Part shown: piece by piece, positions 30,509-44,136 of the stretch | Layout: every line of letters begins with the position of its first letter | How positions within the stretch are numbered: the stretch's first letter is position 1 | DNA from: Tetramitus jugosus | Lineage: Eukaryota > Protista > Heterolobosea | NCBI GenBank assembly: GCA_937625935.1 | Contig: OW569374.1 | Location: forward strand, 62,001-126,000 | Direction: 5' to 3' | Length of the DNA: 64,000 nt | The notes under the pieces: generated by a model | Told to the model about the DNA's origin: nothing | What the model saw: only the letters and a program-made list of their open reading frames with translations | Database searches by the model: none | Program-made: the position numbers and the translations under genes

Positions 30509-33193
30509 ATGGCTTCCGCTTATTCTACATTGGAAGAGAGTGAACAGAAGGGCCTAAGTCGCTTCTTTAGCAAGGCTTTTTGGCGTAATACGGCCTATGC
30601 TGGCGTTGGTGTCGTTATCATTTCCATCATTGCTGCCATTGTGCTCATTCTTGTTCTCAGTATGTTTCTTTTTTTTTTTTCTCTCTCATATCTTATATTG
30701 GCTCAACATCATGCATCAAAGAGAGTCAGCTACACACATGTTCACTGTGATGAATCACATGACTAACAATGCGTTTCACCTTTTTTATATATAGCATACA
30801 AGACACCTGTGACCAAGAAATCCTACTCTTTTGATGCCATGTTTGATTCATCGTTGACTCCCAATTCGTTCTCTGCAGTCTGGAGCACATCTCCAACAAG
30901 CAATCAAATGTTGTACTGGAAGACGATACAGCGTCAACAATCATCATCATCTGACGAACAATCATCATCGTTGTTGACTCAACCAAAGAGTATTGAACAA
31001 ATGCTAAAGAACAATGATATTCAAGCAATGAAGGAACAACAACAATCCAATGAAACATGTGTCATTGTGTCCAAGGATCCAGCATCAGGCAAGGAAGCCA
31101 TCATTTTTGATCAATCACACTACGAAGAAACCATTCCATGCGGTACCACTTTTACAGTGTCACCTGATGCTCGTTACATTGCATTCAAGACTGAAGTGGA
31201 AAAGGTGTTCCGTCATTCCATTATTGGCAAGTATTTGTTCTTTGACACACAATCAAAAAAGTTCTCTGATGTCTCTCCAAACGCCAACAACAAGCAAAAG
31301 ACACTTGTCTGGTGCCCAAGTGGAAACACTGTTGCTTTTGTTGAGAATAACAACATTTTTGTCAGAAAGTCACCAAGTGCACCTGCTGTTCAAGTCACAA
31401 ACGACGGTAATGATGAACTGTTGTTCAATGGTGTGACCGATTGGATCTACGAAGAAGAGGTTTTTGGTTCTGTTGAGTCCTTTGTTTGGAATCAAGACTG
31501 TTCCAAGATTGGCTTCTTGAAGTTGGACGAGAGTCACGTGCCAGTCTACAGATATGAAGAGTACTATGCAGATAAGCCATACCCTGTTCCAATTAACATT
31601 AGAATTCCAAACCCTGGTTTCCCTAATCCAATCCCTAGTGTTCATGTGTATCATTTGGACACTGATAAGGTTGTTGATGTCAACTTGGGACCTGTGAACA
31701 CTGGAGATTTGACCAAGGACTTTTATGTTTACGATTTGAAGTTTGCCAATGAGACTGCTCTTGCTGTGATTGTCGTTCCTAGAGTTCAACAAAAGAAGCA
31801 AATTTTGCTCGTGAATACTGAAGTCACCGGTACTGTTGCTGAACCTGTTGTCATTCGAACTGAAACCATTGATACTTGGATTCAATATGCCAGAGAAGTA
31901 ACTTTCCTATCTGGTCATCAATTTGTTGACTTGATTGCGTTCAATAACTCTTATCATATTGGTTTGTTCAATGTCGGACAAGAAGAACCTGTCAAGCTCT
32001 TGACATCTGGACCATATGAAGTCACAAACATTTTGGCATTCAACCAACACACTAGAGAATTGTTTTATGTGAGTGCTGAGAAGGGATCCACCGAGAGACA
32101 TGTTTATGGTATTAATGTCGACACGAATGCCAAGAGAGCCTTGTGCAATGATGCAAAGGAAGGATACTACTCTGCCAGTTTCAGTTCTGATGCCAACTTT
32201 TATATTCTCAACTATCAAGGACCAGATCTCCCATACACCTTGCTCAAGTCCATTGATGAGAGCAAGAATGTTACAGAGAAGTTGGTTGACAACTCTCACT
32301 TGAAGAAGACATTGAATCACTACAACATCCCAACTTCTCAAATTACTACCATCAAGAATAACCATGGTGATAACATGAACGTTTTGTACGTGTTCCCTCC
32401 AGAGTGGACCGAAGGTACCGAGATTCAATACCCTGTGTTGATGTACTTGTACAATGGACCTGGTTCTCAACTCGTTACAAAGAGCTACTATGCCATGCAT
32501 AACTCTTTCTCCATGTACATGGCCTCTCAAGGTTTTATTGTTGCTACTGTTGACGGAAGAGGTACTGGCTTCAAGGGTATTGACTACATGACTTGTACTT
32601 ATAAGAATTTGGGACAAAAGGAAGTCGAAGATCAGATCGCAGCCGCTAGAGTTATTGCTGATCGTACTGACACTGACGGTGCCAGAATGTCCATTTGGGG
32701 CTGGAGTTATGGTGGCTACATGGCCAGCAAAGTCATTTCCTCCACCTTGAATGATAATCTCTTTATGCTCGGTGTCAGCGTTGCTCCTGTGACCGATTGG
32801 GGTTACTATGACTCTGCATACACTGAGAGATACATGCAATGGCCTGCAATCAATCCAGCTGGATATTTGAACTCTTCAGTCATCAGTCAGATTAGAGATG
32901 AAAAGTGTCCATTGTTGCCAACCGAACAAACTGAAAAGAATGGTGATGTATCATTGGTTCAATCATCCACTAGATTTGTTTTGGTTCATGGTACCGGTGA
33001 TGACAATGTTCATCCATTGAACTCATACAACTTGATGACCGAGTTGCAAAATCGCCAGATTCAATTTGAAACCATGTTCTATCCAAACAAGGACCATTCC
33101 ATTGCTGGTGGGGCCACCAGAAGACATCTCTACCGCTTCTTGTCCAACAAGATTAAGCAGTATGTCACGGAAGACAAGTGCACCACATTCTAA
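30509..33193 (+). CDS. DPP4: Dipeptidyl peptidase IV family (S9B) type II membrane peptidase, 2 exons, ~849 aa
   Basis: Exons 30509-30659 and 30795-33193. N-terminal TM anchor; NGVTDWIYEEEV, GWSYGG nucleophile, YDSAYTERYM, HGTGDDNVH, YPNKDH. Confidence 0.92.
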
Positions 33194-33378: not shown

Positions 33379-34830
33379 ATGAAAAGCTTTTTGCGTCGAC
33401 CAGGAAGTGCTGCATTTCGCATATCTCCCAATTGGAGAAAGCCACAACGATCACCATCTACACGACCACCACTACATTTCAGAAACACACCATCACACTA
33501 CTACTCTTTGACACACAACATACCATGTCAACAACAGCACTGTTGTCCATTCTACCACCATAGTCATCAAAGCTATCATCATAGTAGTAACAATAGTAAC
33601 AACAACAACAACTCACATTCAATCAGCACAGGTGACAACAATGAAAATTCAAGCTTTGCAAACAACATTCAACAAAAGTACTCTGATTTGACTCAGTCCA
33701 TACTGAGAATTTGGAGCACTGATAGTCCACAGCAAGCACACATGAATTTTGCATCGACTCTGCAGTTGTTTACAGAAATTTTGCAAAATTTGGATGAGCG
33801 ACTATTCACCTGTGATCACATTCAAATTCCAAAGTACAAGATTGCGCAAATGAACCAATTTTTTGAGGCGCCAAAATTCGATGATCGCTCTACGGTAAAT
33901 TTGCCGCCGTTTCAGCGGAATTATCACAAAATTTCCATGGAGTCCATGCTCTTGTTGGAGTTGTATGCTCAATTTTTGGAGAGCTACTCTCTTTCACAAG
34001 TGGATCTCACATCAAACATGGTGTTATCACCATTGTCATCTCCAACTCAAGCAAGCTCTCACCCGTCGTCATCATTGTCATTTGATCGAACCATGTTGAA
34101 TGATGAACAGTGGTCCTTGCTCCAAAAAAGCTTTATGCAGAGGCATTCAGTGTACAAGATTTTTAGGTTGGTAGATTGTTGGTTTCAAACGTTTGATGAC
34201 GTAAAGATGATACAACTTGATTTTGAGAATGAGTTTGCTCATGTCAGGATGTGGGAACGATTACAATCACGGTTTATTACTCGTCAATTTCCCGCTTTTG
34301 TAAATCCACATGGTAAATCAAGTGTATTGAACATTTTGTTGCTGAATTCAGCTCGGTATGGCTTCAATCTCGGTGTCAAAGCAATGAATCATCAATTGCT
34401 ATCATTGGCAATCTCAGTGTTTGAAACTGTGCTCAGTGATATGAAGTATATGCCATTGGATCGGTATCAGCGCTATCTGAAGGAGAAGCGCCTCAATATC
34501 AAGGAAAAAAATGAAAATTACAATGAAAAAATGGACTGCTTCGCAATCATGGCCATGGTGCGATTGGCTGCGTGTTATCAAACAGTAGGACGGTACGGAG
34601 ATGCCCGGCTCCAACTTGACACAGCCCATCAGATGACACAATCCTATCTCACCAATGATGGGGCATCAATATGTGCACAGCATACCACAATTAGACACAT
34701 GAAACGTCACCTGGAGATTGTGCAAGAACAAGTCCAATTTTTGAATGAGGAAGAAGAAGCAACACAACGAGAAAACAACTCTGAAGGATCCCTACCTTCC
34801 TTTTTTCAGTCAACGAGCACTGTGAAATAA
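33379..34830 (+). CDS. Hypothetical protein, possible mitochondrial presequence and C-terminal TPR-like helices, 483 aa
   Basis: Long ORF. Arg/Ser-rich, acid-free N-terminus. AMVRLAACYQTVGRYGDARLQLDTA is TPR-like. Confidence 0.65.
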   Translation: MKSFLRRPGSAAFRISPNWRKPQRSPSTRPPLHFRNTPSHYYSLTHNIPCQQQHCCPFYHHSHQSYHHSSNNSNNNNNSHSISTGDNNENSSFANNIQQKYSDLTQSILRIWSTDSPQQAHMNFASTLQLFTEILQNLDERLFTCDHIQIPKYKIAQMNQFFEAPKFDDRSTVNLPPFQRNYHKISMESMLLLELYAQFLESYSLSQVDLTSNMVLSPLSSPTQASSHPSSSLSFDRTMLNDEQWSLLQKSFMQRHSVYKIFRLVDCWFQTFDDVKMIQLDFENEFAHVRMWERLQSRFITRQFPAFVNPHGKSSVLNILLLNSARYGFNLGVKAMNHQLLSLAISVFETVLSDMKYMPLDRYQRYLKEKRLNIKEKNENYNEKMDCFAIMAMVRLAACYQTVGRYGDARLQLDTAHQMTQSYLTNDGASICAQHTTIRHMKRHLEIVQEQVQFLNEEEEATQRENNSEGSLPSFFQSTSTVK

Positions 34831-34996
34831 AGTCTCACAACCATCTTCCTTGCGGATAGCGCACACATCCAAAACATTGACGTTGACCAAAAATAATAGT
34901 GACATCCATCGTGAATCTTCTACAGCGAAAAGGGACTACCCAATATTCGAACAACAACTTGTTAACGACAAACAAAAGATCACTTTGACAGCAAAC

Positions 34997-37339
34997 ATGT
35001 CATCATCTCCCAGTATTATTAATACCAACATTAATAATACTCCCAACCTTGTTCACCACCCATCTTCTTCTTCACCAATTGTTTCACCCTTCTCTTCCAC
35101 TGGTCCCATTCATAACAACAACAACAATGACAATAACGGAGATGAAGACACTCATTCCCAAGTGAGTGACTACTCTCCTTCAACAGCTTCTCCATCGACT
35201 AGCAATTCACCATTTGGTACATCTCCTACTAAGGTGTCGCACCAACGTGGACGACGAAAGTGGAAAAACAAGTATCACAACTCACCACATCATCAACTGT
35301 ATGTGAACACGAATTTGACAACAAGAACAACATTGACGACAACAATGGAAGAAGAAGAAGAGAGAGTGACTTCACCGACATCACCACCTCTAAGTGCTCT
35401 GAAACGAATCAAGGCACGAGCAAACAACACATCTGAGGAGAGCAATGGTGGTTCCGCTAGCAGCAACACTGTGAGCAAGGACCAACTCAAGCTCAATCTG
35501 TCAAGTCTCAAACGGGAAAACAGCTTTCAGAGCAGAAATAGCAGTCGCGGCGGCGACCGATCTCCGCGCACTCCAATAACTCCGGCCGCACTTTTCACAC
35601 CGCGAGGACTCATGACTGTTTTACAGTCACCGAGGAAGTTGCCTGGATTTGGTATTGATGATGTCGAAGAGGATTTACCAGTGCTTCAAGCACTCAAAAA
35701 GTTTTTGTTTCCAGAGCTATGGTTCTTGTTCAAGAGTTGCTATGCTATTATTATTACCAATATTTGTATTTCAAGTCAAGAGAGCATAGAGTTTGCTTTC
35801 GCAGGACAGTTGGGTGAGACAGAGTTGGCAGCTGCCGCTCTAGCGCAAGCTTACTACAATTGTTGCTCCTATATATTGATTGGACTCGTTTCAGGTCAGA
35901 CGACACTTGTTTCACAAGCTGAAGGGTTAAGCAACTCTGGTCACATGAGAAGAACTGTTCTCAAGAGATCTTTTCTCCTCATTACGCTGTTTTCGATACC
36001 ATTGTTGGTGCTGTTGAACGTTGGTGGTTATGTGCTCAAGATGTTGCAAGAAGAACCCGTGGTGGTGACTTCTGCAGGACTGTACCTCAACTATTACTCT
36101 ATTTCATTGTTAGCTACAGGTTATAACTCAATTTTGACCGAGTACATGGTTGCTCAATCCTATTTTGTGCTGCCGATGTTATGTGCGATTTTTGGAGTGG
36201 TGATCGATGTGTTGGCAAACTTGACGTTGACTCGTGGAATGCATCGTAAGAAAACAAAGATTGGGTTTATTGGAGCGGCGATTAGTGCTGCCATTACTCG
36301 TTGGATTTCGTTTCTATTGTTGATCGGATGTGTACTCTTTATTGAGCTGTACAAGTCAAGACAGGAGAGAAAACAAGAATTGGAACAGGAGCAAGTGAAC
36401 TCGATATCTGTGGACTCACAAACACCTGCAGCAACACAGGTCGAAACAGCGAGGAAGGCATTGGAGGAAGAGGAAAATTTAACATTTAAACAAAAGATTT
36501 CTCGTTCACTTCAGAGAAATGTGATCGATGTGATTGATCCACGTGGTATTTGGGAGTACATGAAGGTTGGTGTGCCTGGATCTATGATGCTGGTCGCAGA
36601 GACTTGGAATTTAGAGATTGCGACAATTATTGCTGGATTTTTACAAAATCCAGCTTATCTATCAGCCCATTCAGTGGTTGTGAGTGTTTGTGTCTGGGTG
36701 TTCACAGTACCCTTTTCTATCGGAACAGCCACATCTGTAAGAGTTGGTTATTGCATTGGCTCGAACAAGCCAAATAAGGCAAAGGTATCCGCATTTATTG
36801 GAATAGCTGTTGCTTTGATCTTCATGATCATTGCTTTGATTATAACATCTTGTTTGAGATGGTATCTTCCCAAGATATTTACCTCTTCGAAGGAAGTACT
36901 GGAAATATCAGCAATTCTTCTCCCAATTGCCTCTGCCATTCAAATTTTGGATGGATTACAGACGACAATTGGAGCGATTATTCAAGGAATGGGCAATCAG
37001 TACGTGGGAGCTTCCTCCAATATCCTGGGATACTACTGTATTGGATTTCCTGTTGGTGTTATTCTAGCCTTCACCACACCACTCCATATCTATGGTTTAT
37101 GGATAGGAATTGGTGTAGGTTTAGTGTTTGTTGTTATTGTTATCTCTGGTTATGTGATGGTCTTTGCTGGATTCAGAAGAGAGGTACCTCGTGCGAAACG
37201 AAGAGTGACGCGTTCAGACGTCAGGTTGGGTGCCAAGAGATTGGATGTTGCAACTCCAACTCCCAAGGCAGCAACTCCCAACACACAATTGCCACAAGAC
37301 CCTACAACCACAACAAGCGTCTTTAGCCCTTTTCCGTAA
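34997..37339 (+). CDS. MATE family efflux transporter with long disordered N-terminus
   Basis: FAGQLGETELAAAALA, TLVSQAEG, IGFIGAAIS, IGTATSVRVGYCIGSNKP, QILDGLQ, YYCIGFPVG, GLWIGI; about 12 TM segments. First ATG in frame at 34997. Confidence 0.92.
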   Translation: MSSSPSIINTNINNTPNLVHHPSSSSPIVSPFSSTGPIHNNNNNDNNGDEDTHSQVSDYSPSTASPSTSNSPFGTSPTKVSHQRGRRKWKNKYHNSPHHQLYVNTNLTTRTTLTTTMEEEEERVTSPTSPPLSALKRIKARANNTSEESNGGSASSNTVSKDQLKLNLSSLKRENSFQSRNSSRGGDRSPRTPITPAALFTPRGLMTVLQSPRKLPGFGIDDVEEDLPVLQALKKFLFPELWFLFKSCYAIIITNICISSQESIEFAFAGQLGETELAAAALAQAYYNCCSYILIGLVSGQTTLVSQAEGLSNSGHMRRTVLKRSFLLITLFSIPLLVLLNVGGYVLKMLQEEPVVVTSAGLYLNYYSISLLATGYNSILTEYMVAQSYFVLPMLCAIFGVVIDVLANLTLTRGMHRKKTKIGFIGAAISAAITRWISFLLLIGCVLFIELYKSRQERKQELEQEQVNSISVDSQTPAATQVETARKALEEEENLTFKQKISRSLQRNVIDVIDPRGIWEYMKVGVPGSMMLVAETWNLEIATIIAGFLQNPAYLSAHSVVVSVCVWVFTVPFSIGTATSVRVGYCIGSNKPNKAKVSAFIGIAVALIFMIIALIITSCLRWYLPKIFTSSKEVLEISAILLPIASAIQILDGLQTTIGAIIQGMGNQYVGASSNILGYYCIGFPVGVILAFTTPLHIYGLWIGIGVGLVFVVIVISGYVMVFAGFRREVPRAKRRVTRSDVRLGAKRLDVATPTPKAATPNTQLPQDPTTTTSVFSPFP

Positions 37340-37818
37340 AACCTCAATCACGCACATAAAAGGTATCACCGGCGTCGGAAAAAAATTCTTACCCTTTCAT
37401 CCGCGCGTAGAAAACTTGACATGAGTCATCTGTCGTGAAAGTGTTGTAATGGATGTCGTTTTTTGACAGATGAATTTGCTATTCGGACAAACAGAATGTA
37501 CTAATGAGGAAAACTGACGACCAATCTCCTTCTCCACACACATTCTCATCAACGTTTCGCCATAAAGAAAACGAACAACAATAACCAACCACACATCGCT
37601 TTGTTGATCGACTCCATCAACTTCTCTCTCTCACACACACAAAACGTCACTATTTGGATCGACCGGCAATCCCAAAGAACTTTAACACACTTACATAAGA
37701 GAAGGGTGAAGGGTCACATCACACAAAAAAACACATCAAGGTTTTCATTACTTTATTAAAAAAAAAAGAACTACACACAAGAAGAAGAAACAAATCTAGA
37801 GAAAAAATTGTATTAGGC

Positions 37819-40207
37819 ATGCCAGCAGCAGATGAATCCACAACTACCCTCCAGCAACTGGCCACAGCTCGACGTACCAGGAGCAGTATCAAATTTGGAA
37901 TGTTAAACTTGATGAATCCGTTTGAGAGTGAACTTGAAGACACGCCCATGACTCACCGAAATGGCGCCACGGATTCCACTACGACGCCAGACCCTGAAAA
38001 AAAAAGGAAAAGCAGCAAAAAGAAAAAAACATGTTGGCAACAAACAGTCAACTGTTTGTTGAGTCTTCGTGTGAGAACCATGTTGGTTCTATTGGGTATC
38101 ATTGCCGTTATGATGATAATCTTTTTAGCTATTTTGATATCGGTGTTTGCTACATCGTTTAAGAAACTAGAGACTAGCACAACTGAAGATGCGACAAAAC
38201 GTGTGTCCAGGGCCATTTTTGATGATTTTGATCAACAAATGACTAGACTTTTGAGTTATGCCATATGGGTATGTACAACGTCAGATATTGCTACCTTTTT
38301 TTTTGTAAACTCTGATTTTTTTGAAAGGCGCGACAAAAGCTAACAGATACGAATGATAGACGGACACTGCCAATTTAATGAACAATTTTACACAAGAGGA
38401 CTGGGAACCATACAGAGAAGAAAATTATAGATATGATTATATGCAGAGTGCCCAGGGAACTAATCTTGCTCTCTTTTACTACAATGATGGTACGTTGGCT
38501 GCTTACGTAGGCTTTGATTTCACCACGGGAGCCAACATTTCTGTTCCTCAAGAGTTGGCCTCACTGCCACTGGACCATCCACTCATGGTTAACATGAGTG
38601 ATATTGAGCACCGTGCCGGTGGTTATATCGTTGCTAAGAACTACATGGATTATGGTAATATGATCTTTGCGGTGACTGCAGCACCTATTCAAGCCGATGC
38701 TGACAATGCACAGACTGCAGGTGTTCTCGTGTATGCCACCATGACTCAACCAGACAAGGTTATGACTCTGTCTGTGAGATCTCAATTGTGTATCACTGTG
38801 TACACGATGGAAGACATTCTCTCAAAGAGCTACTTGTCAAAGTATAGAGGTTTGAGCAAGGGTAGCTATATACCAGTCGATATCTCAAATTCCGTTTGGG
38901 AAAATGATGAATCCAGAAGGATTGAAGTATTGGATCAATCATCTATGTCATTGCAGAATAGAGAGTGCTGGCGTGTGAGAGGCGGTGAGAGAATGGCTGC
39001 CTTCAGAGTGTATTCTAACATTTTTGGTGAACCAGAGGTTGTGATTCGAGCTGATGTGAATCGTTATATCAATGATCTTGGATGGAGATCCTTCGGTCTT
39101 TCATATGGTATGATTGTTGTTGGTTGCGTGCTCATGGCTATTGCTGTCCTTTTGTTTGTAGAAAGAGCTGTTTTGCATCCAATTTTGGCACTGAGTCATG
39201 GTGTGCAAGAGATTGCTGAAACCAACAATATTGAAGCCAGAGTTCCTCAAACTTCATCCAGTGAAATTGGTAGATTGACAAGAAGAGTCAACGAAATGTT
39301 GTCCTCATTGGACTATAGTCAAAAGAAGATTAAGGAAGAGCATGGAAAATTGTCCATCCTGTTGACCAAGGTGTCCATTGAAGAACAAAAGGCTAGAACA
39401 ATCATGAACGGTATTCCTGACTTTATTCTAACTGTTGAAAAATCTGGAGGAGTGATTCTCAATGCCAATAATGCCTTCTACAACAAGCTTCGATTCCCAC
39501 CAAATGACGTGGAGAACAAGATGCTCATTTCATCCCTGTTCAAGAATATGACACACAATGACATACTGAAGAACTTCCAACAGTTGGCTGAGCAGGAGCA
39601 ATCTATAGAAACTGCCATCTTTACCAAGTTCAAGAGTGAAATTCCTGTCCAAGTATCTGTCAGCATCATCAAGCTGTTGGTTAATGAACAATTGGTTGAA
39701 TCATTTGTAGTGATGTGCAGAAATATGAGTGAACATCATGAAATGAAGGAGAAGATGAATGCCCATGAGGAACAACTCAAGACTCTTGCCACTCAGATCG
39801 AATTCGAAACAATGCTCAGAACTCCATTCTACAAAGAAGCATTCAAAGAGTTCTGCAGAAAGGAGATGAGCGAGGAGAATATACTCTTCTTGGAGGCTGT
39901 TGAAGACTATAGATTGATGACAAAGACCCATGAAAGAGCTCTCAAGCAACAAGAGATTATTGACAGATTCTTGAAAGAAAATGGCTCGTCTCCCTTGAAT
40001 TTGTCCCACAGTGTCCTGCAGCGAGAGTTGTTCTCAATTGAGAAGGGATGTGGTCAAATTGACCTATTTGATCAATTGGAAATTGTAGTTAGAGGCATGG
40101 TCATGTCCGACACCTTTGCTCGGTTCAATGCCGAGAACAGGCGAGGAAAGGAAAATGCAAAGAAGAAGCAAGAAACTAGTCCATCCATTCTTGAACAGGA
40201 CAAGTAA
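37819..40207 (+). CDS. Two-TM sensor: CHASE4-like ectodomain - HAMP - PAS - RGS, 2 exons, ~765 aa
   Basis: Exons 37819-38268 and 38360-40207. Intron GTATGT..GCTAAC..GATAG is phase 0 and gives SYAIW|TDTA (CHASE4 DWAxWDDT-like). Two TM helices, HAMP, PAS and RGS motifs are all readable (see findings). Confidence 0.85.
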
Positions 40208-41212: not shown

Positions 41213-43141
41213 ATGGCGAAACCTAGACAAAGTAGCAGTAGTAGCAACACCAATGCTCAACAAACCAAAAAACAGGTTCAATCACTCTCTAAAAAGGAGA
41301 AGAAGCTACGGTGGACAATAGATATCCCAAAAATTAGTTCTGCTCAATTCAATGCCATTTGTAGCTTACTAACCAATGGAACATACAATCCTTCTATGTC
41401 ATCTTCATCTGACAAGCGCTCTCTTTCTGCTCCTTCCAACAACAATAACAAGCAAAAAAAGAAGAAGAGAAGAAGAGTGTTGAGTGATGATGAAGAAGAA
41501 GACGTGGATGATGATCATTCTGAAGAGGAAAAGACAACAAGCAAGAATAAGAAGAAACGAAGAAGGACAAACAATTCTGTATCAACAACAACAACAAAAA
41601 ATAAGCAGTTAGGAGATGAAGAGTCTGACCCCTTTCACTCCATGTACAATGATTACAACAATTTTGCACGAGACTTTACGATAACAAATGATTGTCTTGC
41701 CAAATTGGACAATGAAATTCTTTTGTTAGCAAAGAATAAGAAGAATGGAGAGGCAAGTGTCACTACTGAGAGAGAACTTGAACAACAATTACTGCGGCAA
41801 CAACAAAACCAGGAAGAAATTAGAGAATTGGAGTTGAAAATTAGAGAATTTGAGCAACAAAAGGCTCATTTGATGGATATGCTACAGGAAGTGACAGTGA
41901 GAGAAGAACAGGCACGTTTGGCTGAATTGGAGAGAGAACGTCTCATGAAGAAACAACAGCAAGAGCAGGAGGAGGAAGAAGAACGGTTGCGGATCGAACT
42001 GTTGGAAAAACAACGACAAAAGGAACAAGAAGCGGAACAACAGTTGGAACAGGAGAGAAAGCAGAGAGAAAAGGAGCTCCTGGAAGAACGGACGAGGAGA
42101 GAAAAGCAGGAAGAACAGGAGAGGTTGGCCAGAGAGGAGCAGCTGCGGATCAAACAGGAGCAAGAGATGCTGGAAGCAAAGCAAAAGAGAGAGCTTCAAG
42201 AGCGTCTTCAAGCAGAGAAGGAGCGACAAATGGAACTGGAAAAACTACGTGAGAGCAGTGAGTCGAGTCGTGTCAAGCACGAGAGCAACACTGTTGTATC
42301 GGCGCCTGAACCACCAAAGCCTGCAGTCGAAAATGTGTCACCAACGCCCACATCCAGTGCACCCTCTATTCAACAACTCCACGTTGAGAAGGAAACAAAG
42401 AAGAATGTCGACCTGTCGCCATTGTCTTCTCCTTCCAGCAGTGCACCACCTCCACCTCCACAATCCACTACACCATCCTCCGCCAATCCACCTCATCCTC
42501 AAAGAAACAATCACCACGGTAACAGCAGCGAGTCCAATCATCATCATCCTCATCACAAATCCTCCATTCACAGCATCCCGATCATGAAGAAAAAGCCTGA
42601 ACCGCAAGGTGCCATCTTGGATCTGCCTCAGCATCAACCACTCCCACATCCGCCTCAGCACCATCACCATCACTCTCATGGACCTCCACCTCCACATCAC
42701 AGTGGCGGCTATCATCATCAGCCACCACCTCCACCTTACCATGTGCACAACCGTTCACCACCTCCGCCTCACTCCAACGATTCTTCATCCTCGGTCGGGA
42801 TCAATGGTGGTATCAGAGGAAACAATGTAGGCGGTAATGGACGATCTCCCTCACCTCCTCCACCTCATCCAAAGTCACCCTATACTCCAAATGGCCGTAA
42901 CATGGCGCCTCAACATTACTTCCATCCACCTCCACCTCCACCACACTCCCGATCCAGTGGTCCACCACCACACCATTATGACCACCATGGAAATGTGCCA
43001 CCACCACCGCCACATGTTCATTCTCGAGGTCCACCACCACATTCATACATGTCAATGGGTGGTGGTCATCGGAATCGACACAACTATAGAGACAACAGAG
43101 ATTCCCGTTATCCACGTGGTGGAGGAAGACGATTCTATTAA
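41213..43141 (+). CDS. Low-complexity protein: basic NLS-like tracts, E/Q/R coiled coil, Pro/His-rich tail, 642 aa
   Basis: Long ORF; KKKKRRR tracts, charged helix, PPPPH repeats, RGGG end. No recognisable globular domain. Confidence 0.7.
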   Translation: MAKPRQSSSSSNTNAQQTKKQVQSLSKKEKKLRWTIDIPKISSAQFNAICSLLTNGTYNPSMSSSSDKRSLSAPSNNNNKQKKKKRRRVLSDDEEEDVDDDHSEEEKTTSKNKKKRRRTNNSVSTTTTKNKQLGDEESDPFHSMYNDYNNFARDFTITNDCLAKLDNEILLLAKNKKNGEASVTTERELEQQLLRQQQNQEEIRELELKIREFEQQKAHLMDMLQEVTVREEQARLAELERERLMKKQQQEQEEEEERLRIELLEKQRQKEQEAEQQLEQERKQREKELLEERTRREKQEEQERLAREEQLRIKQEQEMLEAKQKRELQERLQAEKERQMELEKLRESSESSRVKHESNTVVSAPEPPKPAVENVSPTPTSSAPSIQQLHVEKETKKNVDLSPLSSPSSSAPPPPPQSTTPSSANPPHPQRNNHHGNSSESNHHHPHHKSSIHSIPIMKKKPEPQGAILDLPQHQPLPHPPQHHHHHSHGPPPPHHSGGYHHQPPPPPYHVHNRSPPPPHSNDSSSSVGINGGIRGNNVGGNGRSPSPPPPHPKSPYTPNGRNMAPQHYFHPPPPPPHSRSSGPPPHHYDHHGNVPPPPPHVHSRGPPPHSYMSMGGGHRNRHNYRDNRDSRYPRGGGRRFY

Positions 43142-43293: not shown

Positions 43294-44136
43294 ATGTCAC
43301 TACCATCAGCACCGCAAGTGAGCACCCTTGTTCAAAAGGTAAAGGATTCCAGTGAACAACTCGTTTGTGCTGTTCAACAACTCCAAGAAGCAATACAAGA
43401 GCAAGACAAGGAATGTTCGAGTAAGTATGGTGAATTGAGTCAATTACTCTCCAGGTTGAGTGCAACATCGACGAATATTGGCCCACACAAGAAGATCAAG
43501 CTCAGAATTGGCGAGAAAAAGTTTGTTACAACGTTAGCAACGTTGACCTCCGAAAAAGAGACGTTCTTCAGTGCCATGTTCAGTTCGAATTTCAATACAG
43601 AGCCCGATGAGGATGGAGAGTTCTTTATTGATCGCAATCCAAAGTATTTTGCACTCATTCTAGACCATTTGAGGGGTGTTGATATTGGTTTGACTGTAGC
43701 TGATTTGAGTAGAAGTGAACGTGACTTGTTCTATCAAGAGGTGAGCTTTTATTGCATACGCTCACTGGAGGTGCCTGCTCCCAGAATGAAGACTATATTC
43801 GTAGGATTTGCCGAATGGGAACAAAATGCAGCTTTACAATCAAACCAAAATCAAGATGCTCTGATGGAACACGCAGCAGCAAGTACTTTTGCTGGGTGTC
43901 GAGCGGCCACTGCAGATGAATACACACAGCAGAAGATTGAAGGATTACCAGAGATCAACACCTCCACGCGTATTGTGCTATTCAAGGGACCAAACAACAC
44001 TGGAAATGTCTCAGACAAGTGTTTGTCTGGTTATGCACTCAAAGGAGTGGGCGGAAACGCAAAGTTTGATGGTACATTCACCCACCTTGGTTTAACTAAC
44101 GGTAAACGCTCCTGTGTATGTGTTCGAGATGAGTAG
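43294..44136 (+). CDS. KCTD-type BTB/POZ domain protein, 280 aa
   Basis: IKLRIGEKKFVTTLATLTSEKETFFSAMFS..DEDGEFFIDRNPKYFALILDHLR; N-terminal coiled coil; unassigned Cys-containing C-terminal domain. Confidence 0.88.
   Translation: MSLPSAPQVSTLVQKVKDSSEQLVCAVQQLQEAIQEQDKECSSKYGELSQLLSRLSATSTNIGPHKKIKLRIGEKKFVTTLATLTSEKETFFSAMFSSNFNTEPDEDGEFFIDRNPKYFALILDHLRGVDIGLTVADLSRSERDLFYQEVSFYCIRSLEVPAPRMKTIFVGFAEWEQNAALQSNQNQDALMEHAAASTFAGCRAATADEYTQQKIEGLPEINTSTRIVLFKGPNNTGNVSDKCLSGYALKGVGGNAKFDGTFTHLGLTNGKRSCVCVRDE

Follow-up and report, generated by a model that had tools for sequence, protein, structure and literature searches.

A Tetramitus jugosus gene encodes a prokaryotic-type CHASE4-HAMP-PAS sensor chain joined to an RGS domain, a candidate receptor-GAP

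Receptor-RGS fusions of the 7TM-RGS type are the accepted way of regulating self-activating G-alpha subunits in plants and, apparently, in Naegleria. Hydrolysis is rate limiting for certain self-activating G-alpha subunits of N. fowleri, whose GAPs are 7TM-RGS proteins of the membrane (PMC9283941). A prokaryote-derived extracellular sensor is also on record for a heterolobosean: the Naegleria "bacterial-type adenylate cyclase" with a Cache domain, described as the single Cache protein of Naegleria and carrying a cyclase output (Upadhyay et al. 2016, PMC4822843). CHASE4 is a member of the Cache clan (PMC4822843). Here we describe a gene from 64,000 nucleotides of T. jugosus DNA (the window) in which this kind of sensor is joined to an RGS domain.

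The gene consists of two in-frame exons on the forward strand, and its product is 765 amino acids long (150 plus 615 codons) (Table 1). The sequence-only reading of this DNA had joined the two open reading frames across a 91-nt intron and had proposed RNA-seq of the 38268/38360 junction as a check. The spliced joint was present in RNA contigs from 4/4 runs, one of them an oligo-dT library and three labelled as metatranscriptomes, and exactly the 91 intron nucleotides were skipped. In addition, a JGI metatranscriptome contig (L021) aligned to both exons with the intron absent and carried an uninterrupted 765-amino-acid ORF, P0001, that is 98% identical to the window protein. Exon 1 was covered by RNA contigs, and P0001 has the same N-terminus. 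The 3' end of this exon reads ...SYAIW, and at a related locus (L022) exon 1 stops at the equivalent ...YANW. These data establish the window gene as real and expressed. The exons were searched separately, and the transcript-derived P0001 was used as the full-length stand-in for Pfam searches, alignments and structure prediction.

The sensor half looks bacterial, and a relative, P0002, carries the JGI label "methyl-accepting chemotaxis protein," as might be expected if the locus were a bacterial contaminant or if unrelated ORFs had been wrongly joined. Neither reading holds, since the GT..AG intron is removed in RNA that includes the oligo-dT library, the neighboring genes are of eukaryotic type (DPP-IV peptidase, MATE, and BTB), 12 sensor paralogs lie on different contigs, and orthologous families occur in four named heterolobosean species. 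The chance of such an artefact is negligible. The label itself was also rejected, because MCPsignal (PF00015) was found in none of P0002, P0001, and the window protein. Similarly, the absence of HisKA and HATPase_c rules out a sensor histidine kinase, and NCBIfam kinase models matched TM2-HAMP(-PAS) only, far under their cut-offs.

Table 1. Coordinates (window numbering) and supporting evidence for the features of the sensor-RGS gene
Feature	Coordinates	Strand	Description	Evidence
Exon 1	37819..38268	+	Start codon, disordered cytoplasmic tail with polybasic stretch, TM1, 40 first ectodomain residues	
TM1	38080..38148	+	Residues 88-110	Direct reading; within model helix 71-148
Intron	38269..38359	+	91 nt, GT..AG, spliceosomal; inside conserved CHASE4 "W-(D/T)DT" motif	
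Exon 2	38360..40207	+	615 codons plus TAA stop	ORF, sequence, Pfam
CHASE4, main part	38360..39091	+	Predicted extracellular; double-PAS Cache-like fold	Pfam, model, Foldseek
TM2	39092..39160	+	Exon-2 residues 245-267	Direct reading; model helix 386-438
HAMP	39161..39310	+	Exon-2 residues 268-317, from the residue right after TM2	Pfam, NCBIfam
HAMP-to-PAS connector	39311..39394	+	Predicted signalling helix	Continuous helix 452-501 in model
PAS	39395..39733	+	Predicted cytoplasmic; ends in DIT-like motif (RNMSE)	Pfam, model 2
PAS-to-RGS helix	39734..39802	+	Joins PAS to RGS helix 1	Single helix 130-160 of model 2
RGS	39803..40129	+		Pfam, phmmer, model superposition, contact residues
C-terminal tail	40130..40207	+	Short, basic, disordered, plus stop codon	pLDDT < 50

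The order of the encoded protein is cytoplasmic tail, TM1, CHASE4 ectodomain, TM2, HAMP, coiled coil, PAS, 40-residue helix, and RGS, with CHASE4, HAMP, PAS, and RGS each backed by Pfam, a structure model, or both. Pfam, the models and the sequence thus agree with the earlier reading of a spliced two-TM protein with these four domains in this order. Sequence and model show a long N-terminal tail, disordered, basic, and rich in Ser and Thr, which a basic cluster upstream of TM1 (KKRKSSKKKK) places in the cytoplasm.

The CHASE4 domain sits between TM1 and TM2, a position that predicts extracytoplasmic placement. Pfam CHASE4 (PF05228) scored 44.6 bits on full-length P0001 (cut-off, 26.2), with profile positions 1-140 matched across the exon junction. 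Exon 2 alone scored only 26.0 bits against the same cut-off because profile positions 1-20 sit in exon 1. The ectodomain was modelled at a pLDDT of ~85-92, and Foldseek matched the model to the dCache sensor domains 3lid, 2p7j, 4xmq, 6fu4, and 5wbf (prob, 1.00; TMt, 0.42-0.50). The Pfam and Foldseek matches bear out the proposal that the ectodomain is CHASE4/Cache-like. The whole-chain model resembles WalK and MCP models. The ectodomain has three N-x-S/T sequons, and two family-invariant cysteines lie at 38789-38791 and 38966-38968. In P0001 numbering they are Cys294 and Cys353, which are predicted to form a disulfide. This Cys pair was found in 54/54 eukaryote-type members and in 0/101 prokaryotic relatives. 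Together, the eukaryote-only invariant pair and the three potential N-glycosylation sites support an extracellular position of the domain.

An ectodomain of this kind could have lost ligand sensing and persist as a structural or dimerising relic or as an adhesion module, leaving PAS as the sole input, if any. Its CHASE4 scores are 26-45 bits, compared with 106-256 bits in prokaryotic members, and the eukaryote-type domains have an insertion and a predicted disulfide of their own, as a relic might. However, the high-confidence model is that of a complete double-PAS sensor fold, many positions are conserved over ~54 diverged family members, and the many paralogs show diversification typical of receptor families. 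Loss of sensing is therefore very unlikely in our judgment, and we favor a ligand-binding ectodomain, although we know of no CHASE4 domain for which a ligand has been established.

The HAMP domain scored 34.6 bits with Pfam (PF00672) in exon 2 and 36.3 bits in P0001 (cut-off, 25) and matched the HAMP regions of YfiN, BaeS, WalK, and NarQ in NCBIfam. Both the family-conserved proline of helix 1 and the E..G..L motif of helix 2 are there. Pfam PAS (PF00989) was borderline, with 22.9 bits in exon 2 and 22.2 bits in P0001 against a cut-off of 22.6, and PAS_9 reached 25.7-26.1 bits (cut-off, 27). The PAS fold is present in model 2 (pLDDT, ~94), which matched the PAS domains of FixL, short LOV, PpsR, and HTR-like proteins with a TMt of 0.7-0.8 and an rmsd of 2.4-3.6 A. 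PAS, a continuous helix, and RGS were modelled together at a pLDDT of 90.

The two linkers are nearly fixed in length across the family, even though its members are just 27-40% identical overall. The spacing from the HAMP asparagine to the PAS aspartate is 43 residues in 37/47 members, 36 in 8/47, and 42 in 2/47, and the 36-residue class is one heptad shorter than the 43-residue class. The conserved phenylalanine of RGS helix 1 follows the DIT-like motif at a distance of exactly 40 residues in 27/35 homologues, a length that is kept while the sequence of this linker is poorly conserved. Near-fixed lengths of 43 or 36 and then 40 residues argue for rigid allosteric coupling, and the pattern is the one expected of register-dependent helical signalling rather than of a flexible tether.

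The same lengths bear on a second reading, in which the protein acts constitutively as a GAP anchored in the membrane and the sensor governs its location or amount, through clustering, endocytosis, or turnover, and not RGS catalysis. RGS domains work as monomers, and this one is canonical; moreover, plant AtRGS1 is regulated by sugar-induced endocytosis. The disordered, basic, Ser/Thr-rich N-terminal tail could hold trafficking or phosphorylation signals, and there is a parallel with the glucose-responsive AtRGS1 (PMC9283941). However, simple tethering of the RGS domain would not readily account for near-invariant linkers that fall into heptad-step classes. We consider this reading plausible but unlikely and prefer direct control of the RGS domain through the helices.

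The RGS domain was matched by Pfam (PF00615) with 60.6 bits in exon 2 against a cut-off of 23.9, and phmmer matched it to the structures of RGS12, RGS10, and RGS14. Its model superposed on RGS8 (2ode and 2ihd), RGS16, and RGS1 with an rmsd of 1.3-2.9 A and a TMt of 0.69-0.87; the superposition on RGS8 in complex with G-alpha-i3 (2ode) covered 110 columns at 1.3 A (TMt, 0.87). The residues SEEN, the asparagine of PLNLS, and the aspartate and arginine of SDTFARF aligned with identical residues of human RGS10 and RGS12. In RGS4 numbering, the contact residues are Glu87, Asn88, Asn128, Asp163, and Arg167, of which Asn128 corresponds to the PLNLS asparagine and is catalytically relevant. Among 41 family members, the G-alpha contacts are kept as follows: the glutamate in 33, each of the two asparagines in 34, the aspartate in 29, and the arginine in 32, with a glutamate instead of the aspartate in 6 more. 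The alignment and the family conservation support the earlier proposal that the EN, N, D, and R contacts are retained. As judged from alignment and model, the RGS domain is intact, with a canonical fold and the G-alpha-contact residues.

An intact RGS domain need not act mainly as a GAP. It could be a docking site for G-alpha-GTP, as an effector or scaffold comparable to RGS-RhoGEFs and GRKs, that recruits activated G-alpha to the sensor or lets the state of G-alpha act back on the sensor (inside-out coupling), with weak or no GAP activity. The N. fowleri RGS-RhoGEF, a candidate effector, binds G-alpha by the canonical RGS interface, and yet its RGS domain had GAP activity on two G-alpha subunits (PMC9283941). 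Mixed dimers with output-less and cyclase-output paralogs would also suit a docking role. Against it, this protein keeps the catalytically relevant asparagine along with SEEN and the D and R contacts, all of them conserved in the family, and Pfam found no further effector domain. Docking as the main role is thus distinctly unlikely, and GAP activity remains our preferred reading of the domain.

We next consider the family. In the 26-Mb genome, the 12 sensor paralogs comprise 6 with an RGS output, 2 with a cyclase output, and 4 without a recognised output. The two cyclase paralogs are CHASE4-HAMP-cyclase proteins of class III, the classical dimeric output, and their sensors fall within the eukaryote-type group as well. 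For the output-less paralogs, no domain was found in the ORF that follows the C14 copy and no RGS match near the C14, C43, and C45 copies. Since four paralogs lack a recognised output, the sensor may also act through partners. Over the Pfam cut-off, the genome also gave at least 130 matches to RGS and 35 to G-alpha; these are exon pieces, estimated at ~20 loci. A canonical G-alpha has its main exon at L024:1468-2394, with the switch I sequence RTKTTGV.

The earlier reading had expected that the architecture might already be in databases, and this proved correct. An exhaustive profile search found ~40 database clusters with sensor plus RGS, compared with just two proteins from a word-indexed protein search. 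The closest named relatives, all heterolobosean, are N. gruberi XP_002670055.1 and XP_002671054.1, N. lovaniensis XP_044549017.1, Willaertia magna KAL9651711.1, and Acrasis kona KAL0487670.1. By local HMMs they have the same sensor, PAS, and RGS and aligned over almost their full length, with 27-32% identity to the window protein. No close orthologue (> ~45% identity) was found among the N. lovaniensis and N. gruberi proteins searched, which speaks against a close relationship of the genome to these two species. These homologues carry no labels other than predicted, hypothetical, "HAMP domain-containing," or "RGS domain-containing." Full-text literature searches on RGS with CHASE4, HAMP, or PAS, in Naegleria and in general, found nothing relevant, although an earlier description may exist. 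Database entries of several heterolobosean amoebae include the sensor-RGS family, which is so far uncharacterised.

The input chain had been proposed to be of the prokaryotic CHASE4-HAMP-PAS type, and sensor-profile homology confirms this. The profile matched the prokaryote-type proteins listed with 127-165 bits (E, 1e-32 to 1e-43), and CHASE4 was carried by 69/69 of those scanned. Prokaryotic sensors such as Microcoleus WP_190759454.1 and Methanomicrobia MBN1761597.1 have a homologous TM-CHASE4-TM-HAMP-(coiled coil)-PAS chain and share with the window protein a DIT-like motif that ends PAS and a helical output linker. The outputs of the prokaryotic relatives are histidine kinase, HD, GGDEF, or cyclase domains, whereas the window protein has an RGS output, a eukaryote-only ectodomain insertion with the Cys pair, and a spliceosomal intron. 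A Pfam search of 14 control prokaryote genomes found no RGS. In an unrooted tree, the eukaryote-type sensors form one group, which the invariant ectodomain Cys pair marks.

The sequence-only reading also held that RGS had replaced the prokaryotic output. This part is reasonable, since paralogs with a cyclase output have the same eukaryote-type sensor, but the tree is unrooted. A prokaryotic CHASE4-HAMP(-PAS) sensor, possibly with a cyclase output, may have entered the ancestor of Heterolobosea, after which an ectodomain disulfide and introns would have been gained and the sensor would have recombined with a resident RGS domain. The family illustrates clearly how an input module of prokaryotes can be recombined with an output specific to eukaryotes and then expand into a gene family.

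HAMP domains form parallel dimeric four-helix bundles, and from this behavior the two-TM sensor is probably dimeric, with the predicted topology described above. The CHASE4 ectodomain would bind an external ligand, and the signal would pass from TM2 through HAMP, the fixed-length coiled coil, PAS, and the fixed-length 40-residue helix to RGS, with the cytoplasmic PAS as a possible second input. RGS would in turn speed the hydrolysis of GTP by at least one of the many G-alpha subunits of the organism, so that the ligand state, by allosteric control of RGS, would set the speed of G-alpha-GTP switch-off at the membrane. RGS domains, however, function as monomers, and to our knowledge control of one by a HAMP/PAS coiled coil has no precedent, which makes the final step of this mechanism more tentative. 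We give somewhat better than an even chance to the proposal that the protein is such a plasma-membrane "receptor-GAP," in which the ligand state of the ectodomain sets the G-alpha-GTP switch-off rate via the fused RGS domain without a GPCR. More tentatively, and with rather less than even confidence, we suggest a heterolobosean class of GPCR-independent G-protein receptors until now unrecognised, in which a prokaryote-derived CHASE4 ectodomain would bind an environmental ligand and, via HAMP/PAS helical register, switch GAP activity in the RGS domain to which it is fused, thereby tuning self-activating G-alpha directly.

If true, this would be the first instance in which the bacterial transmembrane signalling mechanism controls heterotrimeric G proteins, and it would offer protein engineers a natural template for GAPs gated by ligand or light. 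The chain that carries the RGS output here (Cache-type sensor, HAMP, PAS, and fixed-register helices) is the one best understood among bacterial transmembrane signalling chains, and the question of how a cue reaches a GAP is therefore directly testable with the bacterial methods of linker-register change, chimeras, and ligand screens. If present in pathogenic relatives, these proteins would be surface-exposed signalling proteins without a human counterpart.

Compared with the Naegleria Cache-cyclase, the sensor type is joined here to RGS and occurs in 6 such paralogs and ~40 database clusters, and this corrects the picture in the literature of a Cache-superfamily sensor in just one protein of Naegleria-type amoebae (PMC4822843). 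The 7TM-RGS proteins, namely, Arabidopsis AtRGS1 and 28 proteins of N. fowleri (PMC9283941), are likewise receptor-like membrane proteins with a canonical cytoplasmic RGS domain at the C terminus. Sequence and model of the window protein have two hydrophobic helices only and not the 7TM N-terminal domain, and the likeness is thus functional only. The proposed logic would be the same, by analogy: the GAP step of self-activating G-alpha is under the control of an outside cue, with no GPCR exchange factor. In contrast to the 7TM-RGS proteins, the window protein has two TM segments that flank a CHASE4/Cache-like ectodomain, with HAMP and PAS behind them, on a prokaryotic-type chassis that is presumably an obligate dimer.

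The two ORFs of the sensor-RGS gene share a frame and strand and encode a product of 150 + 615 = 765 residues. The sequence-only reading had placed a splice junction at 38268/38360, and RNA data bear this out: exactly the 91 intron nucleotides were absent from contigs of four RNA-type runs from four different studies, soil metatranscriptomes and an oligo-dT library among them. A JGI metatranscriptome contig (L021) contains an unbroken 765-aa ORF (P0001) that is 98% identical and aligned to both exons without the intron. In a metagenomic relative (P0002, locus L022; 40% identity), exon 1 terminates at the equivalent ...YANW. These data establish that splicing of the intron is real, and the skipped intron and the unbroken P0001 ORF exclude an artifact. 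Many soil metatranscriptomes contain near-identical transcripts. Relative to the RNA contigs, the window has small indels (1 to 6 nt) in the 5' untranslated region (37700-37810) and 2 to 3% point differences in the coding region, mostly common to the soil runs, which indicates that soils harbor a closely related strain or population.

Coordinates of the sensor-RGS gene, its neighbors, and related loci elsewhere in the 26.35-Mb genome (G000; C, contig; L, locus)
Feature	Position	Strand	Remarks
Exon 1	window 37819-38268	+	ORF; last residues ...SYAIW
Intron	window 38269-38359	+	91 nt, GT..AG
Exon 2	window 38360-40207	+	ORF; first residues TDT...
TM1	window 38080-38148	+	preceded by polybasic stretch
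TM2	window 39092-39160	+	runs directly into HAMP
DPP-IV/S9 peptidase	window 30809-33193		neighboring gene
MATE transporter	window 34850-37339		neighboring gene; long N-terminal extension
BTB-domain protein	window 43294-44136		neighboring gene
L008, L009, L010	G000:C11:212747-233860		three near-identical CHASE4-PAS-RGS paralogs, tandem within ~20 kb
L017, L018	G000:C39:265845-271707	divergent	head to head; CHASE4-HAMP-adenylate/guanylate cyclase
L025	L025:1480-3066 (G000:C9)	-	single-exon G-alpha-like gene, C-R-K-T-T-G-I
L027	L027:1060-2469 (G000:C34)		single-exon G-alpha-like gene, A-V-K-T-I-G-V

The exons were searched separately, and P0001 was used as a natural full-length substitute. By Pfam, exon 2 contains RGS (60.6 bits), HAMP (34.6 bits), PAS (22.9 bits; cut-off, 22.6), and CHASE4 (26.0 bits; cut-off, 26.2) matches; with P0001, CHASE4 scored 44.6 bits over the whole profile, and the match crossed the exon junction. 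NCBIfam kinase and cyclase models aligned to the TM2-HAMP(-PAS) part only. The full-length model (mean pLDDT, 71.6; ectodomain, ~85 to 92) places a long N-terminal helix before membrane-distal and membrane-proximal PAS-like modules, TM2, and HAMP, from which an unbroken helix leads into PAS. Foldseek matched the whole chain to WalK and chemoreceptor models and the ectodomain to double-Cache sensor domains (3lid, 2p7j, Tlp3, TlpQ, PctA, and TlpC); CHASE4 belongs to the Cache clan (PMC4822843). In a second model, spanning PAS to RGS and built with 36 homologues (pLDDT, 90), the PAS half is similar to PAS domains of the FixL and short-LOV kind, one 31-residue helix links the last PAS strand to RGS helix 1, and the RGS half fits RGS8, taken from the complex with G-alpha-i3, at 1.3 Å over 110 columns. 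In the proposed TM-CHASE4-TM-HAMP-PAS-RGS chain, every domain has backing from Pfam, from a structure model, or from the two together.

An intact RGS domain with retained EN, N, D, and R residues had also been claimed. When PDB sequences were searched with phmmer, RGS12, RGS10, RGS14, and others matched, and in these alignments the window protein has the same residues as RGS10 and RGS12 at SEEN, at the Asn in PLNLS, and at both the Asp and the Arg in SDTFARF, in agreement with that claim. We take the aligned residues to be RGS4 Glu87, Asn88, Asn128, Asp163, and Arg167, which contact the G-alpha switches. Among 41 family RGS domains, the contact residues are kept in 33 (Glu), 34 (each Asn), 32 (Arg), and 29 (Asp, with Glu there in 6 more). 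A rival reading is that the domain is a docking site for G-alpha-GTP.

A sensor profile (CHASE4 to HAMP) searched against 1.84 billion representatives yielded 13,807 proteins with E <= 1e-3, of which 216 had E <= 1e-30. Among the best 150, local HMMs found the family PAS and RGS in ~40 and a cyclase in ~8. Named RGS-type members are from Naegleria gruberi (XP_002670055.1 and XP_002671054.1), N. lovaniensis (XP_044549017.1), Willaertia magna (KAL9651711.1), and Acrasis kona (KAL0487670.1); all five are 27 to 32% identical to the window protein and carry no functional annotation. As had been guessed, the architecture is already public, only as hypothetical proteins. No close orthologue was found among N. 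gruberi and N. lovaniensis proteins in the homologue searches; taken with the near-identical soil transcripts, this suggests that the window comes from a soil heterolobosean distinct from both species. Full-text literature searches returned no description of the architecture, and older surveys may contain one; a study of N. fowleri counted 79 non-7TM RGS proteins, and its retrieved passages do not mention CHASE4 or HAMP sensors (PMC9283941). The remaining matches examined were prokaryotic. CHASE4 was present in 69/69 of those scanned, with HAMP in 49, HATPase_c in 41, and HisKA in 34; others bear PAS, HD, GGDEF, GAF, EAL, MCP, or cyclase domains. The named cases are proteins of Methanomicrobia, Chloroflexota, and Microcoleus, and the one of Microcoleus is a CHASE4-HAMP-PAS-GAF-PAS-cyclase protein.

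In a quick IQ-TREE analysis of 93 sensor regions, which was unrooted with a poorly resolved backbone, 54 eukaryote-type rows split from 39 prokaryotic rows (SH-aLRT, 100). The eukaryote-type cyclase forms were one clade (support, 98), and the output-less copies of this genome fell within the RGS forms. A pair of cysteines in the ectodomain (nt 38789-38791 and 38966-38968), the second inside a eukaryote-only insertion, was found in 54/54 eukaryote-type and 0/101 prokaryotic sequences; the pair is an independent marker that agrees with this split. Together with three N-x-S/T sequons, it is compatible with an extracellular, disulfide-bonded domain; a rival reading is an ectodomain blind to ligand. 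On the simplest reading, an ancestor of these amoebae acquired a prokaryotic sensor once, and its output was swapped afterward (cyclase, RGS, or none); we infer this direction of transfer from the distribution.

The genome contains 12 paralogs of the sensor part. RGS is the output in six: the window gene, one copy each on C3 and C30, and the tandem C11 copies, which have SLEN in place of SEEN and look like a recent triplication. Two have a cyclase output (C39), one of which, at 55.8 bits, matches CHASE4 more strongly than any other sequence in the genome. Four have no recognized output: L013 (C14), L014 (C43), and L015 (C45), TM-CHASE4-TM-HAMP-PAS copies in which PAS is followed by a terminal coiled coil, and L016 (C10), whose in-frame TAG may be a sign of an intron or of a pseudogene. 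The neighboring genes have no obvious connection with the sensor gene; ORFs 33379-34830 and 41213-43141 of the window had no match in a Pfam search. The genome has at least 130 RGS matches, an expansion no smaller than that of N. fowleri, for which 108 proteins have been reported, and 33 HAMP matches. Outside the window, ~30 tandem HAMP domains spaced by 276 or 552 nt sit in one 3283-aa open frame (G000:C30:395916-403793, minus strand), an array that greatly exceeds in length the poly-HAMP arrays of fungal group III histidine kinases. The 35 G-alpha matches that exceed the Pfam cut-off are exon pieces of an estimated ~20 loci. L025 and L027 lack Arg at what is presumably the position of the catalytic switch-I arginine, by comparison with the G-alpha-i1 sequence, and may encode naturally GTPase-impaired G-alpha subunits.

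Measured from a conserved Asn in HAMP helix 2 to a conserved Asp in the PAS core, the spacing takes three values across 47 family members: 43 residues (37 members), 36, shorter by exactly one heptad (8 members), and 42 (2 members). In 27 of 35 homologues, the DIT-like motif ending PAS ([RK]-[ND]-x-[ST]-E; RNMSE in the window protein) lies exactly 40 residues from a Phe conserved in RGS helix 1, and the sequence of this linker is poorly conserved despite its set length. Fixed or heptad-stepped linker lengths are a signature of register-dependent helical signaling in bacterial sensor kinases and cyclases. Here such lengths speak for allosteric coupling of the RGS domain over simple tethering; a rival reading is a constitutive GAP with regulated localization, as for AtRGS1. 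The proposed receptor would be a dimer with two TM helices per chain, and a ligand at the ectodomain, possibly with a PAS cue, would alter the exposure or orientation of RGS and so change the switch-off rate of G-alpha-GTP at the membrane. We infer the GAP activity, ligand, dimerization, and regulation of the window protein. In this mechanism, a dimeric coiled-coil signal would have to control a monomeric GAP. A receptor-set GAP rate matters where G-alpha is self-activating and hydrolysis is rate-limiting. The window protein falls among receptor-RGS fusions; in N. fowleri, some G-alpha subunits are self-activating, with hydrolysis rate-limiting, and 7TM-RGS domains serve as GAPs (PMC9283941).
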